A DNA stretch of 64,000 nucleotides from Bugula neritina. Lineage: Eukaryota > Animalia > Bryozoa. The notes beneath the pieces were generated by a model. The model made no database searches. It saw only the letters and a list, made by a program, of their open reading frames with translations, and had not been told where the DNA came from. Shown in pieces: positions 8,001-20,900 of this stretch. The translations under genes were made by a program, and so were the position numbers. The DNA is taken from the NCBI GenBank assembly GCA_964035545.1, contig OZ037765.1:7202698-7266697 (forward strand), in the 5' to 3' direction. Numbering within the stretch: position 1 is the first letter of the stretch; every line of letters starts with the position of its first letter.

Positions 8001-8851
8001 TACAATTATTATTGTAAAACATTGTGCTTTGCATAGCTTAATTTAAATAAACATCTACAAACACATATATACTATTAAAGAACATTGAAGAACAAAATTA
8101 AATGTAAGTCTTTGGTAATGCATCTAACGATGTTAAACAGAGAACGCTCAAACTGTGCTTGAAATGCTAGATTAGGATGTATTAGAACTGTCTTATTAGA
8201 AATCATTCTTCTTGTTAGTCAGATGGTTTGCTTATAAGAGCAGTTTTGCCATCTAAGTGGGGTCATTGTGTAGATTAAGTTACAATAACCTATCTTGATT
8301 ATTACTATATACAATATTATATATGCTCATCTGATCTAAATACTATCATATATGTGCTACAGCAATACTCTGACACTTATAACGTTTTCAGATAATTTGA
8401 GATTAATAGAACTGATTGGTACTATTTATTATGCACATTTATAGTTTAGAGAAGACAACTCTAGTCTCAGTCCTCCATTACCTTAGCTGGTGCAGAGTTT
8501 ATTTTACCATTATAATATATAAGATATATGAAATAACTATATAACACAATTTATAAAACTGAAGATTTTATGACATGATAAGTTTCAAGAGTTATTGTAG
8601 CATGTACAGAGTGTGTCACCATACAGCACAAGTATAAATGAGTTCAGTTACTAGGATATATCAGTTTGAAATTAATTTTATACTTATTAAAATAGTCAAA
8701 CTGACAAAATATGAATTTTAATCCCTGACACACTTTGGTGATTAAAGAATAAGTAACTTTCTACTACTATTATAGAGGATTTAAACTTTGAAACTCAAAC
8801 AAGATTTGAGAGTTACTAAACAATTATCAGCACGGAGAGTACAGCACATTG

Positions 8852-9149
8852 AACTACACTACACTACACTACACTACACTACACTACACTACACTACACT
8901 ACACTACACTACACTACACTACACTACACTACACTACACTACACTACACTACACTACACTACACTACACTACACTACACTACACTACACTACACTACACT
9001 ACACTACACTACACTACACTACACTACACTGCACTACACTACACTGCACTGCACTACACTACACTACACTACACTACACTACACTACACTACACTACACT
9101 GCACTACACTACACTACACTACACTACACTACACTACCCTATGCTACAC
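8852..9149. repeat. (ACACT)n pentanucleotide microsatellite, ~300 bp
   Basis: Near-perfect run with occasional gcact variants. Confidence 0.98.
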
Positions 9150-12100
9150 TGGGTTGCTTATTAAAAATTTTGGAACTCTAAAAATTGTTTCACTTTTATC
9201 TTATCTTTATGGTAACTTTGCCTGTTTTTATATTCACTAAATTGCAAATTACATGCCCAAAAGTTAAAGCAATAAAGTACAGATCTATACCAAGTCCCAA
9301 AACAAGAAAGCAAATATAAATGTTTATTTACAAATTAGAACATATGCATGCAGTTGGCTCAGTCTTTGGGGGGAAAGAAATTGTCATGGAAAACGTAACA
9401 CAATACACTGACTGTAAGTTCAAATTAGCAAGGTAAACAACAAATAGCGGAATCAAGTATTTGCTTTAAGCTATCACAAAAAGCAGTTGGTTAAACAAAA
9501 TTTCCTCTCAGCATACTTTCTTACGTTTACCTCTTCAATACTTTGACATAATAGTCTATATTCTAAGTTATAATGAAAGCATATCTCAGTTTGTACCCTA
9601 AGACTTGGAAGTAAGCCAGTAATCAATACTAGAGATAGAATATAAGCATCGGCTACTGCATACTACATTCATTATTCATAATAACTAGATGCGAATAAAT
9701 GCTGTTATAGATATAAAGAAAGTTCTATGCTATACTTTCTATTAACAGATTTTGCTATCTTTTCCAATTAAAAACGTGAAGGTTTGTAATTCAAAAGACG
9801 TTTTCTTTTAATGAGGTAAGAGTATTATATTAGTGATTATAAATGCAAATTAATTTGAAGAACTGTTGTGAGACTAAACATGAACTTTCCTGCGAGTATC
9901 ATCTTACTTTAGCTTATTTTTCTTGTTGTATAATACTTTAATGCAGGATATTATTACATTGTTGCCATGCTAACTTGGTTCCCACAATTTAACAACATTC
10001 TTTTGTATTATTGGTTATATAACACCAACAACAAAAAAGCTTTTTAAGCATTACTACAGTTGATATTAATCAAGTTTAATATTAGCAACCTGTAAAGTGA
10101 AAATAATGGTGTGTGTTATGACATTAGACACTTTAAAAACAAAAAAGTACTGTGTTAATAGCACTAATGAATGACCATAATAACACGCATATCCTTTATA
10201 TTCACATGGCATGATTATGAATATTATGTAATTTAAATACGAATATCATACAAAGCATGTCACTTATTACTTGATTTAACAGACACAACTATGCTGTGTA
10301 AAAGAGAGAATAACTTACTTCAGTAGTCAACTTTATTAATGGAAAACAATCTTTAATAAATATTCATGATTTAAATAGTTATGACAAGAACCACTTTATA
10401 AAGCTACTCAGGTCTATTTCCTTCAGGTATTTATCTTTCTTATCTTCTATTATTCTGCTGAAATTGAAGTCAATATAACAAGATTTAGGACTGTAGCTAA
10501 GTTGTTCCTGTTTAATTCAACTTTTCAATTTTCTGCTTGGAGTTTTTATATCATAAAAGAGCTTAAAATTTACAAAATCTTCGAAATTTGACAATTTCTA
10601 TGCATTGAAAAGTGATTTCAATAATATAAAATATAATGATGATGAAATACTTTTTTACATAAGGCTAGTTGGTCATACCTTTCAGAATGCATGCTTGCAG
10701 CATACAACTGGTTAGAATCAATGACTTTCTTGCTTTCTAATAGTATATACAGCTTTAAGCATATTAATTATTAAAAGGACGAAGTTCTCAGCTACATATG
10801 AAATACTCTACAAGTAGCTAAGTTTTTCCTTCAACCCTCTTTTTAGTGGCTAACAATATATAATCATTACCGAATGTACAGCTCTTAATAAATTAACAAT
10901 TCCTTACAATAAATAACAGCAAACAATCAGATATCAATTTGTTTTAATTATTTATGTCATGTGATTTACTTGAATCAACCTGTGAAATGTAATTTAATAT
11001 TGCAGAGTCACAAGGTTACAGCTGCTCATACAATTAAATCAAAAGTCTAATACTCTGGCATATTGTAAGCAAATACAAATGCAAATATACAATATACAAA
11101 TCTCAGTGTTTACACTAACAGCAGAGGTCATCTTAATGCAACTATAGAATTCTCCTGAATATCGCTCACACTCTAATCGGTTACAGCTAAAGCTTAATCG
11201 AATATAGCCCGCTGTCCCTCGTAAAATTGTTTCAAGATTAGAGCAGTAATCATCTGCTCCAGTAATTGTTGTTTTAGATTTTGGGCTATAGTGTTGGTGA
11301 AACTAAACACAACTGGTGCCTGTGAAGCAGGTAGTAAAAGGCAGCTGGGTAGAAGGCGGTGCATGCCAGGATGCTGTGTTGTACTAGAGACTCAGCTCGC
11401 AGTGAATAATAGAACAGACTGGACGTAGTATACCATAAACAAGGTGAGACAAGATAAACTGTTTATAATTACTGTGGAGTGAAAAGTGTAGAAACACAAA
11501 CTACAAAAGAGTATCAAGGTTAATGAGTGTGCTGCTTTAATAGGCATCATTTAGAGAGATCATCCACCTGTATATATATATACTGTGATGTGCTGAACAA
11601 TACAACCGAGTACATTGAAACCTAAAGTGTTTGGATAACCACACCTTGGGATGTAGCATCAGACTGAATATACCTTAGAGAGCTAGTCGATTTTTCTATA
11701 TCCCAAATCAAATATTACAAGTGCTATACGCTATATGAATGGGCACCTTAAAAACTTTTATTATCATACAGTAACTTTTAGTTTTGAAACATGTTACATA
11801 ACTTTCAATGCATAATCGGTATTTTCTATGTCAACTTGAGGTGGTTGGATGAGTACTGAAAATATTATCTTTTTTGAAGCAGATTCTAAACAGGAAAAAT
11901 TTCAGTAAATTATAAATAATCTCCCAAATTATTATTGAAAAACTTACATCTACACTAAGTATTATGATATTTATTCCTTGAAGAGCAGTTTTGAACTTGA
12001 AAAAGGCAAGTTGCAAAAAATAACTTGCTTGTTTGTTAGCATAAGTTTTAGCAGTTGCTCACTATATTTTAATAAGTATATGCTAAGAACCGTGTCTGCT

Positions 12101-12538
12101 ATAGACCAAATTGTTCATTTATCCTATATTTTTAATTCACAAGTTTAATTCCCTATAAGTTTGTGAATATAATTGTTTTATTATTTGCTTTCTGTTTCCA
12201 TAGTTCATGGTCATACAATTTTTAGTTTTGGGAATACTACAATCATCTTCTATGATTATACCTAAAAGCTTACAGTTTTCAAATTAAGAGCTATTATAGT
12301 TACATCTATGTAATAATCTACCTACAATAATTTTTATATAATACAAGCATGCTGTATGCACTATGTTCAGATAGACTGGTTAGTTTTTATATGCATTCGT
12401 ACAAACAACTATGAGTTATATAATTAATTATATTTAACCAGGGTTTATAAATCAGTGGCAGCAAGTGTTTGAAGTAGATACTTTATCACAGATGTTATAT
12501 ATGATATTTTATTAGGATAATTGGTACTCTCTGATAGT

Positions 12539-12541
<3 letters not shown>

Positions 12542-12606
<65 letters not shown>
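12542..12606. repeat. (TA)n microsatellite
   Basis: Direct reading. Confidence 0.98.
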
Positions 12607-12608
<2 letters not shown>

Positions 12609-12676
12609 CATTCAACTTTTTAATGTAAAATAGCTGTAGGACTCATATCATATCTAATAAAATATTTTGCAGGTTT

Positions 12677-15600
12677 ATGGCATCTGCTACTGCGTGGCTA
12701 CCCTTAGCAAGGGCCTCGGCTATAGGCTGGGTACCTATAGCAAAGTGTCCGATACCTCCAGCCCCAACAACTAGTAACAGTCACAGGTCAGATCTGAGGC
12801 TAAGAATCAATGTTAGTGGTAGAGAGTTTGAAGTGTGGAGAAATACACTAGAAAACTACCCGGACACATTATTAGGATCGAATGAACGAGACTTCTTCTA
12901 CTGTGAAGAAACTTGTGAATATTTCTTTGATCGTGATCCTGACATATTCAAATATATACTAAATTATTACAGAACTGGAAAACTTCACCTACCAAAGTCT
13001 GAGTGCATAGCAAGTTTTGATGAAGAATTGTCATTTTTTGGAATTATGCCAGATGTTATTGAAGATTGTTGTTTTGAAGAATATAGAGATAGAAAAAGAG
13101 AAGCGCAAGAAAGAACCACTGAAAAAGATACAGAAACCGTAGACTTTCCATTGAACCAATTAAACACATTTAGACAAAAGATGAACAAGTCTTTTGAAGA
13201 CCCACATTCTAGTACTGCTGCTCTAGTGTTTTATTACGTCACGGGATTCTTTATTGCTATATCTGTGTTGGCCAATATTGTGGAGACAATTCCTTGTGGA
13301 CTAAATGCTGTTACGAATCAGAACTTGAGTTGTGGAGACCGTTACGTAGAAGCATTTTTCGTTGCAGATACGGCTTGCGTCATGATATTTACACTGGAAT
13401 ACCTGCTAAGGCTTTATGCATCATCTAACCGCTGCAAATTTCTCAAAAGTATTATGAGTCTAATAGACATAGTGGCCATTTTACCTTACTATATTACCTT
13501 GATGATTAAAGAAAATGACGACGTGAGTGGTGCGTTTGTAACTTTACGAGTATTCAGGGTGTTCCGAATATTCAAGTTTAGCCGACACTCTCAAGGACTA
13601 AGGATTCTGGGCTACACACTGAAGAGCTGCGCTAGCGAGTTAGGCTTTCTCCTCTTCTCTATCAGCATGGCTATTGTTATCTTCTCCACAATCATGTACT
13701 ATGCTGAGAAGAATGTTGGAGATACCAAGTTTATAAGTATTCCTGCGGCATTCTGGTACACCATAGTCACTATGACCACATTGGGGTAAGTTACTGTAAA
13801 TTATAACTCTTGAAAAGTAAAGTTAGCCATTGCTATGCTATCCTCTATTGTTACTTTTAATGTTCTTTATTGAATATTCAACACACATACATACATAAGA
13901 TGCTGACTGGTAAATGAACTTTGACTTGTCTGACATCACCCACACCTTATATAATAGTCACTGGACATGCTGTGGAGGGAAATAATAACTGCTTGTAAAT
14001 TGTCAGACTTCCTATAGACTCTTTTATCCTAAACTATGCCAGCAAAAACTTACAACTTTGACTGGATGTGTTTGATGTTACTAACAATCCGTATAGAATT
14101 CTAGCTACTGGTCAAACATGACATGTTTAACAAGTGCCCCCTTTATATTCTGCAATTAGTCAATCTTGCGTGTATACTAACATGCATGACAAAACAGGGT
14201 AAGTTTTAGAGCCAACTGCTGTGTTGGAGTTATACAAATATAAATATCAGCAAATAGAATGAATTAGTAGCCAACATGGTACGTATTTAGCTCCCCTCTA
14301 ATACTTTATAAAAATTAAAGAGGTTAAAACACCCATACCAGGTTTACTATCCGATTAATTAATATAAATATAATATCCCACACAGCTTGCAGTTGCGTCA
14401 TAAAATGAAATCTTATACTTATACCAATGGATTAAAAATTGCTTTAAAAATCAATATTTGGATGGAAGATTATCAAAAGAGTAAGATTTGAAGAAAATCA
14501 AAAATAACTTTGCTAATGCTATGAGGTGTTAGATGACTATAGCACTGACCCGCATTAATACTTGAGAGTCCAAACAATATTGATTGCAGATACAAAGTAT
14601 ATTAATAGTCGAAATGAATGCCTGCTATATTCAAGCCGTGAAATGTAATAAACATTCCAACAGTATAAAAAGTTGTTCTCTTAATAAAAACTTAGCAAAG
14701 CACCTTCCTAGTGCAGCTGTTATGTAAATTGTGCAAAATGGTATATACATCATGATATTCCGTGACTTGTGAATGCAGAAGGCATGATGGCAGCATTAGA
14801 ACAGTAACTGTGACCAGTGCTTTAAAAGTTGCAAAGTCAACATAAACCCATTATTACAAACCATAAAGAGCATGCACATTAAATTGCCTCTATAACGAGT
14901 AACTATATTACATTTTATGCATTTCCCCAGATGATTATTTGTGTGAAATACAATCAACATAGCGATGGCTTTCCACTTATATACACTACAAATCTATAGA
15001 GGATTACTCTGGCATTATTGTAGTTATTAAACAGATGTAGAAGTACACAAATATATTGTTTGTGGGTTCAAAAACATTTTCATATTACAAGCATTTGGGA
15101 ATGGAGAGAATTTGTTAATTATCTAGACTTTAATAAAAAGATAAAAAAATATTAATTCTTATAGTTCAATCATTCCAATGGATAAAAATAGATAAAAAAA
15201 GTTGTATTTGTTTATCATGAAATATTTACACACTGTCAGCATGTTTAGAGGCTAGACTTTATAAGCAAGTTGCACTAACTTATAACTGGGTATCATTAAA
15301 TAATATCATGCAGTTATAAAACTTAATTTAAATTCTAAATCTTTGTGAGAGTTCTAAATGTAAAGCTTAATTATGCCTCAAATCATACTGGAGGCTGGTT
15401 TGGGGGACAGGAGCATTATGACCAATGTTTTTCTGATGTCACCAACATCTCTGCTAGAGTCAAGGACACTGACTCACAAGGCTAAGACTGCTGCCTAGAT
15501 AACAAAATCAGGTAGTCATGACTCTCAATTAAAAATATCTAAAAATAAGCTGCTTCACACTTGACCTTTCATGTCATGTTGAATCAAGGATGTATGTAAC

Positions 15601-17633
15601 ACCATGTCTATATTAAGAAGTGTCTGTCTACAGCATGGAGGCTATCTATTTGTTAGATATGGTGACATAGTACCAAGTACTATACCTGGTAAGCTGGTTG
15701 GCAGTCTATGTTCGCTCAGTGGTGTTCTAGTAATAGCCTTACCAGTGCCTGTCATTGTATCAAACTTTAGCAGAATCTATTCTCAAAGTCAAAGAGCTGA
15801 GAAGCAGAAGATACAAAAGGTACTCAACCATACGGCACTAAGACTTTTGTATCCACCATTCATTGAATATGTTGACCATGTGTGTAATTGTTACAGCTAT
15901 GGTGATATGACACCTAATACATATATGGGTAAAGTATTTGGAGGTATGTGTGCACTCTGTGGGGTGTTGGTCATTGCTTTACCTGTACCGGTAATTGTTT
16001 CCAACTTCACTAGAATACTTGCTCAGAACCACAGACAAGAGCAAGTCAAGTCTCACAAGGTAGTTTCACTGCAGGCGTTGAGTGAACCACGGTTGAAGGA
16101 GTGTGTGTGTGACCTGACATTAACCCCAGCAGTTCTTTCAATTTGCACTTTCACACCTTTGCTAGACATGATTAGATTTAATTGTAAACCAGACTGGCTG
16201 ACTAAAGAAAAATGGTGTAATTTTCTCTAACAGTGAAACACTTGTAACAAGCCTTCTTAAACACAACATTCCACTCACAGCCTATAGATAGTAGGCTCCC
16301 TGGTTGCTAGAACGGTCTTCCCTGGAATATAATTGTTTTGCTACTAGTCAGATAGATACAATATGATACGTTGCAGATGTTGGAGCACAACAATTACTGA
16401 ATGCTTAACTGGATAATTGAGTTAATAAATTACCATAATTATCTAGGTGCTATAACTTTGCTACAGATAATTTTAATGGTATCAACAACACTAACATTGC
16501 TTTATACATTTTATCATAGTTACATAAGTGTTACTTCTTCTGCGTAGAAAATTCGATTAGCTAAAATAAAGATGGCAAAACTGGCAAGCAACCAAGCATT
16601 CCTTAAGGCAAAGAAAGAGCTAGCAAACATGGAGTATGCCAGGGCAAATGGGCTGGAGAAGGAAAGCTTTGACGAAGAGAAAGATGCTTTTGATATGCAA
16701 CATCATCATCTTTTAACATGTTTAGAGGAAACAACAGTAGGTTCAATAGATTAGGAATACTATGTGGAAATTTTGCATTAATGAGCGTATATAAAAATGG
16801 AATGATAACTCCTTAACGATTATTTTAGGGACATGAGTTTACAATGGCTGCTTCCATACCAAATGAGAACAAATTTATGCAGCCTCCACTTTCTACCACA
16901 CCTCTAATGTCCTGCAATGGCTCTCTCACTTCCGTAGACACGTCTTGTTGCTGCAAAACTAGACGTAATAAATCCCAGGTATATCTAATAATCAATTGTG
17001 AGTCGTTGTAAATTATAGCTAATTTCTTCAAGATATTTGTTTATAAGCTAAATGAGGTGCACAATGATGTAGTCTTTGTTAATCGACTTGCACATATAAC
17101 TTTTAGTTCAGCATTGGCACGTTAAAAAGCAGATTTATATAATAGTTTATGTTTGCATTTGATTGAAACTTTGATTCAAATTAAATTTGGTATGTTAATA
17201 TAAAATTGTAGCCAATAATTGTCTACACTGATATATCATTGTGTTTAAAGATAATATACTTTTATATACATACTTTTGAACAATCAACCAATAATTTTCT
17301 AGCCGCATCGCCCTGCTTAGCTCCTGATATTTATGATTTGATAAGGCAACTATTGTTGAAGAGTGGCAATATATTACTTTTTAGATCCGTCACTTAAAAA
17401 CACATCAAGGTGATAATGGAATTTCTCTAATACACACCATCAACAACAATCTCAAACAGAGCAATTTAAGAGATGAAAAACTATCCTCTACCACAGATAT
17501 CCATATCACGCTGGATGAGAAAGAAGGAGATTACCATGGCAACCATCTGTACCAAACTGACCAAAACCAGCCTTATAAGGTAATAGAGCTGACCGACAAT
17601 GGTGGACCTTCGCATACATTCACGATGCTATGA
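12677..17633 (+). CDS. Shal: Voltage-gated K+ channel Shal/Kv4 (KCND family). Exons: 12677-13785, then 15657-15819 OR 15897-16059, 16548-16736, 16829-16978, 17385-17633
   Basis: Kv4 N-terminus [16 protein letters not shown]1 domain [11 protein letters not shown]4 [15 protein letters not shown], pore TMTTLGYGD, S6 PVPVIVSNF and C-terminal [13 protein letters not shown]. The predicted end ...FTML* resembles a class I PDZ ligand. The last exon is less certain. Confidence 0.95.
15657..15819 (+). CDS. Shal: Kv4 alternative pore/S6 exon A (163 nt)
   Basis: tgttag|a tat ggt gac...caaaag|gtactc; encodes [54 protein letters not shown]. Confidence 0.9.
15897..16059 (+). CDS. Shal: Kv4 alternative pore/S6 exon B (163 nt)
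   Basis: ttacag|c tat ggt gat...cacaag|gtagtt; encodes [54 protein letters not shown]. Confidence 0.85.
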
Positions 17634-17972
17634 AAACTCATGAGATCTGAAAGATACAACTTATTTTATATTTTAACTTTTGTACTTTTCAATAGAATAA
17701 ACAACATTTTATTCATACATTTAATTTATATTTATTCTTGGCTGGTTTCATTTATATTAAACATACACAGCACTAGTATAGATTATATTCTCTCAAAGAT
17801 TATGTCTCATGAGATTAGAAATCAATATTAGCTTTTAAATTGGTTGCAAAAAATATATACTTATCTTAATTTTCTGAAATTCAATATTTATTAAATCCAA
17901 TCTATATATTGTTTAACAACAATCTATTCATATACAGATCTGCACAAAAGTAAACCTAAAAAGTTTGGTATG

Positions 17973-20900
17973 TCATAAAAACCTAGAAATTACAGCAGCT
18001 AACCCAACCGCTGCAAATCCAAATACTGCAGTTTTTATTATTTTATGTTCTATGCTATCTAATTTATGGTCAATTAGCGCAAGGATTTCAGTTTGTGTGT
18101 CAACATTGTTGTTGAAGCTGAAGTTAGAAGAGTCTGGTTCAGCTAACAGTTGTTTGTTTATTTCGTCAACACATGACTCAATGCTATCTAGTCTGTCGAC
18201 AACTAGCAAACTACTTGACTCTTTTGAAGTCACAAGATTCTTGAGTTCTCTCATTCTAAATCTGTTGTTTAAAGTTGTACCTGCAAATAGAAGCTCCAAA
18301 AGTAATAGCATCAAAATCTAAAGGTAATATTCACCTTTACTATTGACATGATAGGTGATGCAAGGTACAGCTGGAATTAGTGTCCAGGTAGATTAGATTA
18401 TAGAGCTAAATTGTCATCAACAGATAGGAAAAATAACTACTGCCACATACAATATAGCAGCACAAGCTTTAACTATTCATATGCCTTCCACAGTTTACCA
18501 TTTCAATAGCATATCAGCCAATAAGGATTCACTATACATACACAACTAATTATAGCCACATTATTTACTTTACAGAAAGCATTCTCTATGGAATAGCTAA
18601 AATATAAATATTGACATTTTAAGTGCCAACGAACTATTGTGGGAAATTGATAATTGTATGTGTTTGATAGAATTTCATCAGGAAATGAACATATCGCAAT
18701 TTCAGCAAACTCTAAGCACAATACACAACTTCATGTGAATCAATTAGTAGCTTTAGATTAAAGCAGTTTTTTGCTAATTAAATTCAAAGCGCAGTACTGA
18801 CTGATACACATGTACTAATTCATTAACAAGTTTTACCAAAAATTAAATTTCTGATAAAAATTATGATATGGCACTTCTTAAGCATGATAATACTATTAAA
18901 CCACACATTGTATGTTTTACTAACTCAACGAATCTGCTATAATTACATGCTAACCATTAATGAAATAAATTATCAGCTTAAAGCAAAAACATGATAACGT
19001 ACAAACGATAGATTAAAATTTGTTGTATTGATTTAAATTCACAAATTAATAAATGAACTCAGAAAAACTTTATAAAGTTTACAATACAACTAGATAAACT
19101 GTAACCTTCACAGGCCTGCTATCTGCATATTTCAAGTTTATTACTCCAGTGAGTGTACAGCATTATACTGTGTTTAAACTAGTATTACTTCTCACCTAGA
19201 CAACTAAATAACAAACCTAATATACCGATACAGGCTCCTAAAACGGAACCAGCGACAGACCAATATTTTGTTTTCTCTGCCTGTGCACTTTCCTTTTCGT
19301 GAGAATCCCTCAGGGCAGTAGATAGCAGCATAAACTGCTGTCTCTCCTTATTTTCCAGCTCTTCAACCTGCATAGCAGAAGTTGTATTCATCACTCATAA
19401 CCTTAAATGTCAGAATCGGGTGAGGACAATTCCCAAGATAAATCTCGCTAATTAAAACGCTAAAATAACACCAGTGATTAGTACATCATCATCCTGAAGG
19501 ACAACAATTACTCAGCTATGTTAATTTGAAACTAAATACAAGACAAGGCAAATCATAGATTTGCTGAAAACTAACATAAAATATTATTAATGTAAAAAGA
19601 GAATATAGTAAATATTATTGACTGCAGATATTTGTAACTTAATAAGTGTACAGGGTTTGACCCCCCCCCCGCCAGGATATGTATAGAATTTTTTTAGATT
19701 TTAAAATTGTGATTAAAAACTTTTTATTAGTGTTATGCTAAATTGATACATGTAGTACTTTTCATTATCACTGCCTGTATCAACTAAGTATGAAAATGAT
19801 AGCAATAAAAATTTTGAATCAAAATTTTAAACATCATCTAATTTTATTTTCTTGCTCTATTCATATAGGCCAATCTATGGGTCAACTCTGCAAAAGTTGT
19901 ACATACTAGGAACTAACAACTACACTTGGTTAAACTTGACAACACCAATAATTTCCCATTTCATCTCACCTCATTACTTAAAACTTGCTCTCCTTTTATT
20001 ACAGAATGCTCCTCTGTCAGCAACTGCAAATACCTGTCATCAGTTCTCGGTATTTTTTCTAACTCTGAGTTCAATTTTTTCAATCTGTTTATAAACAAAT
20101 ACCGAATAAATGAGTTATTTACTATCGCATATTTGATAGAAAATTTTTAGTTTCTCAAATCGCAATAGTGTTACCTTTTATGAATTTGAGATAAATTTTG
20201 TTGCTTTGTTCTACGTTCTTCCTGAACCTGCAGGAAATCTGCTTCTGCCTTCAAAAATTAGCAATCGTATTATATTTATTGATAGTTAAACTTCGTCATG
20301 AACAATTTACCTACCAAACTCATGTCTACTCAGCAACAGTAGTATTCCATTATTTGATTAAAAAATATTTCGAGTACTAATACTATAAGATTTGCTATGC
20401 ATTAGCAAAAACACAATGGCATAGGAGAAAATATGAATGAGTGGATAATATCAACTTTGACCAGCATTGTTAAGAACTGGTTAAAAAATCCAAAACTAGA
20501 AAAACGCAAGGGTAAACATAATCATACTCTGCAGGAGAATAGAGGCCAACAGTCAACATTTCTCAAATAGGACCCAACATCGAAAATTGAAATTGGACGA
20601 TATACAAGAACTTAAGGTATTTTGATTAAAAAAGTAACAAACATATAACAATATTTATAATGATGAAGGAGGCAAAGTTTCAAGAAAGTTTGACAGTGAA
20701 TCATCATCCTAACATACAAAAATGGTATGCAAATCGGTTAATCACCTCAATAACATGTTTCTGTGCTTGTTTAACAACAGTTAGTCCCACAAAATCTTCA
20801 TATGCTCTCATCAGTTTTTGAAGCCTATTAACTACTGACAAGTCCAATGATGTAGTTGTAGTACTAGCACTACTAGTAGAGTAATACTTATATTCTTGCC

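Follow-up and report, generated by a model that had tools for sequence, protein, structure and literature searches.

The Shal/Kv4 gene in the window, i.e., the whole 64,000-nt stretch of Bugula neritina DNA analyzed here, very probably contains a tandem-duplicated pair of mutually exclusive exons, referred to as exons A and B. Each mRNA would take either A or B between exon 1 and exon C, and the products would be two α subunits with the same voltage sensor, filter, and PVP gate. Exclusivity at the protein level would arise from the 163-nt length of the exons, by which inclusion of both or of neither would lead to a stop within four codons; in some loci, steric hindrance by a very short A–B intron may contribute as well, and the choice may be regulated via a GCAUG (Rbfox-type) motif in that intron. 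A wider reading is more tentative and falls a little short of an even chance: both Shal genes throughout a deep lineage, probably Bryozoa, would carry this splice switch, exchanging the usually invariant S6 and intracellular S6 helix for a second version conserved to the same degree, with B as the commoner form and A for particular cells, perhaps under Rbfox control, and the two isoforms would differ in closed-state inactivation or in KChIP coupling. Interchangeable tandem exons are known from voltage-gated channels, where they recur, and the Kv4 case is new in the literature searched, in which no such pair was found described for the pore or S6 of Shal/Kv4.

The exon pair and its gene

The gene is located on the plus strand of an AT-rich window (approximately 33% G+C) and is assigned by its domains and motifs to the Shal/Kv4 (KCND) voltage-gated K+ channels. 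Family and structure searches were run with single exons. In Pfam, exon 1 matched PF11601 (Shal N-terminal motif; E 4.6e-08) and PF02214 (BTB_2, T1; E 1.3e-27), PF00520 (Ion_trans) was found on exon 1, A, and B, the two alternative exons each forming the last part of this domain, and PF11879 (DUF3399, the Kv4-specific C-terminal domain) was found on the exon at 16548, i.e., exon C, which holds the start of that domain. The GYGD filter (TLG + YGD) and the PVP gate were read directly from the sequence. Among solved structures, human Kv4.2 was the best match of exon A (80 bits, followed by Kv1.2 at 60) and of exon B (64 bits, followed by Kv2.1 at 54), in both cases over residues 373–426; the top matches of both exons were KCND2 and KCND3, and both exons reached E ≤ 1e-16 against Kv4.2.

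Exon 1 encodes the Shal N-terminal motif, the T1 domain, S1–S5, and the pore helix, and its 3′ end consists of TMTTLG and two bases of a Gly codon, followed by the donor gtaag at 13786. Exon A spans the outer pore loop, S6, and the proximal intracellular S6 helix, equivalent to Kv4.2 residues 373–426. Exons A and B are in the same phase: the first base of either completes the open Gly codon of exon 1, and both end in phase 0. The acceptors read ttgttag for A and gttacag for B, and the donors gtactc and gtagtt, respectively. Two 163-nt exons, 77 nt apart, of equal phase and with good splice sites, had been described in the initial annotation, and this description was borne out by the sequence, as were the peptides quoted for A and B, which are exact. 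Nucleotide identity between the two exons is 62.6%, and 33 of 54 residues are common to both, among them those of YGD and of the gate motif PVPVIVSNF. The exons had further been said to encode the selectivity filter and the S6 gate; this stands for the S6 gate, and it does not stand for the filter, since only its YGD end lies in A and B and is identical in both, so that the filter itself is not varied. The exons and introns are listed in the table; the exon D donor, gt at 16979, was taken from the sequence alone, with an open frame.

Exons and introns around the pair in the window's Shal/Kv4 gene
Feature	Position	Strand	Remarks
Coding exon 1	12677..13785	+	PF11601, PF02214, PF00520; RNA contigs over 12674-13780 in four runs
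Intron 1	13786..15656	+	1871 nt to exon A; 13786-15896 if exon B is chosen
Exon A	15657..15819	+	163 nt; canonical Shal version; groups with relatives' A exons
A–B intron	15820..15896	+	77 nt
Exon B	15897..16059	+	163 nt; derived version; on long RNA contigs
Exon C	16548..16736	+	PF11879; joints into 16548 and 16736>16829 in RNA
Exon D	16829..16978	+	150 nt; common exon; 16736>16829 joint in X1

One open frame of 215 codons (window 15583-16227) runs through exon A, the 77-nt intron, and exon B, as 163 + 77 is a multiple of three, and a transcript retaining the window's A–B intron would encode, in frame, a protein with S6 twice. The open frame is probably a coincidence, judging from the paralogous gene (163 + 150), which is without such a frame. 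It was the sole reason for considering that the pair might be an artefact of assembly or annotation, or an open frame arising by chance next to the real exon; no support was found for this reading, which is almost certainly wrong: the copies are only 63% identical, both exons are present in independent assemblies and in RNA, and both match Kv4.2 at the E values given above. The reading as a pseudo-exon or artefact was ruled out by the Kv4.2 matches, the RNA, and the independent assemblies.

Some further repeats and channel-like sequences were noted in the same genome. A tandem repeat with a unit of approximately 15 nt (window 8785-9237), located approximately 3.5 kb before the start codon of Shal, is open in all three plus-strand frames and would encode long runs of the peptide unit TTLHY. 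A search of the window's own genome with exon B gave three weak K-channel pore-like matches within 15 kb (G000:C4:17224262-17239747, minus strand) and two matches 4 kb apart (G000:C2:495283-499626, minus strand), and the C4 and C2 clusters may represent either genes in tandem or additional cases of pore exons duplicated within other channel genes. Candidates for a third Shal copy in this genome (L004, L006, L008, and L009) were rejected as un-Shal-like, being Shaw- or Shab-like on reading of their sequences.

Reading frame, transcripts, and exon choice

The exon length of 163 nt equals 3n + 1, and therefore inclusion of both exons or of neither shifts the frame. In the frame set by A, exon B meets a stop at its third codon, as expected from the earlier statement that including both exons shifts the frame, and exon C read directly after exon 1 meets a stop at codon 4. 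Because this early stop lies upstream of further junctions, aberrant mRNAs would be non-functional and likely substrates of nonsense-mediated decay, and we infer such decay for both the A + B and the skipped forms.

RNA data were available as assembled contigs from four probable RNA runs (X1–X4) of four studies, aligned to window positions 12500-18400 and approximately 97% identical to the window. The joint of exon 1 to B is present in all four runs. It was output by the aligner as 13780>15896 with four unplaced letters, which, on reading of the sequence, is the junction of 13785 with 15897 in a strain that has a synonymous Leu codon there. The joint of B to C (16059>16548) was found in X1 and in X3, and loose ends in X2 agree with it. 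The joint of A to C (15819>16548) was found in X1 only, in a single junction contig of 58 nt, 28 of which belong to A. All joints listed are at GT..AG boundaries. The joint of exon 1 to A (13785>15657) and the body of exon A were absent among the contig pieces listed for the four runs; the exon-1 contig of X1 stops where exon 1 stops, as a contig would do at a branch, and this is the sole hint of a joint of exon 1 to A. Thus, of the four junctions predicted initially, 13785>15897, 16059>16548, and 15819>16548 were all seen in RNA contigs, and 13785>15657 was not among the joints listed. The possibility that only one exon is ever spliced in had also been raised, and A and B were both found joined to exon C, so that exon A is used in at least one sample. 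In exon B, the RNA strain differs from the window at two positions, 15939 and 16008, both third codon positions.

Exon A is the canonical animal form and exon B the derived one, and in all four runs the long contigs contain the derived B, not the canonical A, which was unexpected. In X3 and X4, the exon-1 contig continues directly into B, indicating that A is at most rare there. These observations, together with the recovery of A by one short junction contig of one run, favor an unlikely alternative in which only B is functional and A is a relic spliced in as noise, leaving effectively one channel; its main difficulty, the intactness of A among relatives, is considered in the following section. 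A second alternative, less likely still, is a switch of quantity, in which frame-shifted A + B or skipped transcripts tune Kv4 output by decay and the protein differences are secondary. The 163-nt length, which makes both aberrant forms premature-stop transcripts, and the A–B introns of the paralogue (150 nt) and of L027 (176 nt), which are of spliceable size, are compatible with such tuning. Against it, no joint of A to B and none of exon 1 to C was listed in the contigs of the four runs, which is weak evidence, as assembled contigs lose rare variants and give no abundance ranking; furthermore, over seven loci A and B are set apart by five fixed differences, a pattern pointing to selection for two separate proteins.

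Under mutually exclusive splicing, the choice between A and B may be imposed in several ways. The A–B interval is 46, 59, 76, 77, 92, 102, 150, or 176 nt in the eight loci described below. Steric hindrance as a general cause was rejected on account of this range of 46–176 nt and of the 92-nt intron that is spliced in the window gene; a steric block may act in the loci with the shortest A–B introns. For competing RNA pairing of the docking/selector kind, an inverted-repeat scan of 13786-16547 gave only short pairs with 71–92% complementarity, which were judged ordinary for AT-rich DNA, nothing looking above background. The core of the Rbfox site, GCATG, occurs six times in five of the eight A–B introns against 0.9–1.3 occurrences expected (P = 4e-4 with the local background and 2e-3 in a first-order Markov simulation, both uncorrected, with four motifs scripted and only GCATG counted). 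The window's A–B intron is without GCATG, and a single copy of the motif is located 24 nt before exon A. In Caenorhabditis elegans, the exclusive choice between egl-15 exons 5A and 5B is steered by FOX-1/ASD-1 via UGCAUG in the flanking intron. The over-representation of GCATG in A–B introns resembles that system, whereas the likeness here consists of a motif count and does not extend to the A–B intron of the window; control of exon choice by GCAUG/Rbfox is taken as a lead only.

Two further sequences were noted. The pentamer TCCTA is present in five of the eight A–B introns (the paralogue, L015, L020, L027, and L028), often as AGTCCTA near the exon A donor; its position is inconsistent between loci, and it may be a branch-point-like or regulatory element. 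In X4, a 1180-nt contig matches window 17861-18282 at approximately 95%, with unrelated sequence on both sides, and this segment downstream of exon D looks like a transcribed repeat or an exon of another gene rather than part of Shal.

Conservation, age, and distribution of the pair

The second Shal gene of the window's genome (G000:C2, ~20.872-20.881 Mb) has the same exon order, with A and B of 163 nt each and 150 nt apart, as read from DNA anatomy alone. Contigs of relatives were reached via short open frames of public assemblies that match exon B, and an A-type exon followed by a B-type exon was found in six loci, i.e., L015, L020, L023, L027, L028, and L029 (L020, L021, and L022 are the same locus, as are L023 and L024, and L015 and L016 share sequence). 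In all eight loci (window, paralogue, and six relatives), every exon is 163 nt long with ag/gt sites and an open frame, and the pairs of the relatives are flanked by Shal exon 1 and the DUF3399 exon wherever the contig reaches. One further Logan contig has an equal layout at the level of called genes. The initial annotation had considered that one of the exons might be degenerate or absent in relatives; the eight loci keep both. The second exon of L015 (L015:12541-12703) is aberrant: it follows the first after 46 nt and has the usual 163 nt, ag/gt sites, and open frame, is 41–48% identical to every other A or B exon, and has TVP in place of PVP. It may be decaying or strongly re-purposed.

In the exon 1 tree, the pair-bearing loci form one clade with a support of 100 and a long stem, set apart from outgroups comprising molluscs, Lingula, an annelid, a nemertean, and arthropods. 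In the exon tree, the B exons form one clade (91/86; core 99/97), and the A exons form two separate clades (95/89 and 81/89), which mostly track the genes; L023 is an exception, as its A exon groups with that of the window and its exon 1 with the relatives of the paralogue. Since the B exons are one clade, the exon duplication is older than the divergence of the two Shal genes. For corresponding exons, dN ranges over 0.09–0.19 and dS is saturated (undefined or above 1.7); ω was computable for some pairs only (0.04–0.17), dS being saturated or undefined in most. The exon trees and the low dN at saturated dS agree with the old duplication under purifying selection proposed at the outset. The same data bear on the view of A as a relic: A is canonical Shal and intact with good splice sites in eight loci despite saturated silent sites, a span over which a relic would not survive, and the A exons are on average more conserved than the B exons, with a mean pairwise identity of 86% for A and 80% for B. 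Retention of A and B as two working alternatives remains the preferred reading, and the lineage has kept, at silent-site saturation, a second version of an otherwise almost invariant S6 region.

The exon-pair event is confined to one lophotrochozoan lineage. We infer that the pair-bearing relatives are bryozoan and that the trait is bryozoan-wide. Among 52 full-length Shal proteins from other phyla, only the canonical type and no B type was found; Kv4.2 residues 390–421 are almost invariant in these 52 proteins, which range from amphioxus to insects and molluscs. An exhaustive comparison of exon B with 1.8 billion representative proteins gave approximately ten B-type fragments and then a plateau of canonical exons, and no full-length B-type protein among the matches.

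Several candidates for pairs elsewhere were rejected. The proteins P0152 and P0154, each matching in two stretches, have pore motifs that are Shaw-like by eye and unlike exon B. L025 and L026, from other organisms, each contain only one such exon, 163 nt long and identically bounded, and no pair. These single exons (L025:7988-8150 and L026:7991-8153) have an SLCG motif in common with the B type and with the flatworm proteins P0135 and P0137, and they adjoin the B clade in a tree of the 54 residues; the likeness to B may be convergence or long-branch attraction.

Known exon switches and the residues that differ

In Shaker (Kv1), splice variation in S6 and the pore, with effects on inactivation, was reportedly described by Hoshi and colleagues in 1991 and by Kim and colleagues in 1997. 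As in the present gene, S6 or the pore of a Kv α subunit is varied by splicing in Drosophila Shaker, through alternative 3′ regions, and in lobster Shaker, through alternative pore exons. Shaker, however, belongs to another subfamily (Kv1), and the Drosophila alternatives are choices of 3′ end and not an internal pair of the same size. A closer layout is found in CaV1.2 (CACNA1C), whose exons 8/8a (IS6) are likewise a tandem pair swapping S6 with one exon per mRNA, the choice being regulated by a splicing repressor (PMC3060452). CaV1.2 is a vertebrate channel of a different branch with four-domain subunits, whereas the bryozoan Kv4 subunit would be present in four copies per tetramer; furthermore, the bryozoan block, unlike exons 8/8a, also takes in the post-filter loop and the intracellular S6 helix. 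More generally, tandem duplicated exon substitutions are ancient homologous exons of the same length, as here (Copley, 2004; Martinez-Gomez et al., 2022, PMC9741552), and such substitutions are over-represented among voltage-gated channels and have independent origins in different lineages (PMC9741552). In the main text of that human/Drosophila survey, neither Shal nor KCND is mentioned (PMC9741552).

No general principle is changed by the present case. Kv4 joins the channel families that gained swappable S6 exons independently, and, if the lineage-wide switch is true, it would be the first Kv4 pore/gate exon switch and a natural mutagenesis of the gating interface. An animal with only two Shal genes could, by the predicted transcripts, make four A-type channel subunits.

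Diagnostic positions were scored in Kv4.2 numbering over seven loci, with the aberrant second exon of L015 left out. Five positions part A from B with no overlap, namely 386 (V in A, F in B), 393 (S in A, C in B), 413 (Y in A, L in B), 414 (S in A; A, C, or G in B), and 422 (K, Q, or R in A; I, M, or V in B), and position 419 is often altered too; human Kv4.2 has F at 386. The PVP gate and its flanks (395–409) are identical save one A/S change at 399. In human Kv4.2, an alanine scan of distal S6 indicated that its interface with the S4–S5 linker underlies closed-state inactivation, with a strong effect of I412A and mild effects of S410A and Y413A (PMC2638201); positions 410–413 of the exon block lie at the end of the scanned stretch. 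Positions 413–426 form part of the intracellular S6 helix, which is in contact with the T1–S1 linker and bends at A419 unless kept straight by KChIP1 (PMC8566240). Since several of the diagnostic positions lie in distal S6 and the intracellular S6 helix, the isoforms would differ in gating or coupling rather than in selectivity, i.e., in inactivation, recovery, or auxiliary-subunit coupling; the mild effect of Y413A counts against this reading. The pair may serve as an evolution-tested set of substitutions for probing closed-state inactivation and KChIP modulation. In the post-filter loop (376–386), changes are inconsistent between loci, and a difference in toxin sensitivity via this loop is possible.
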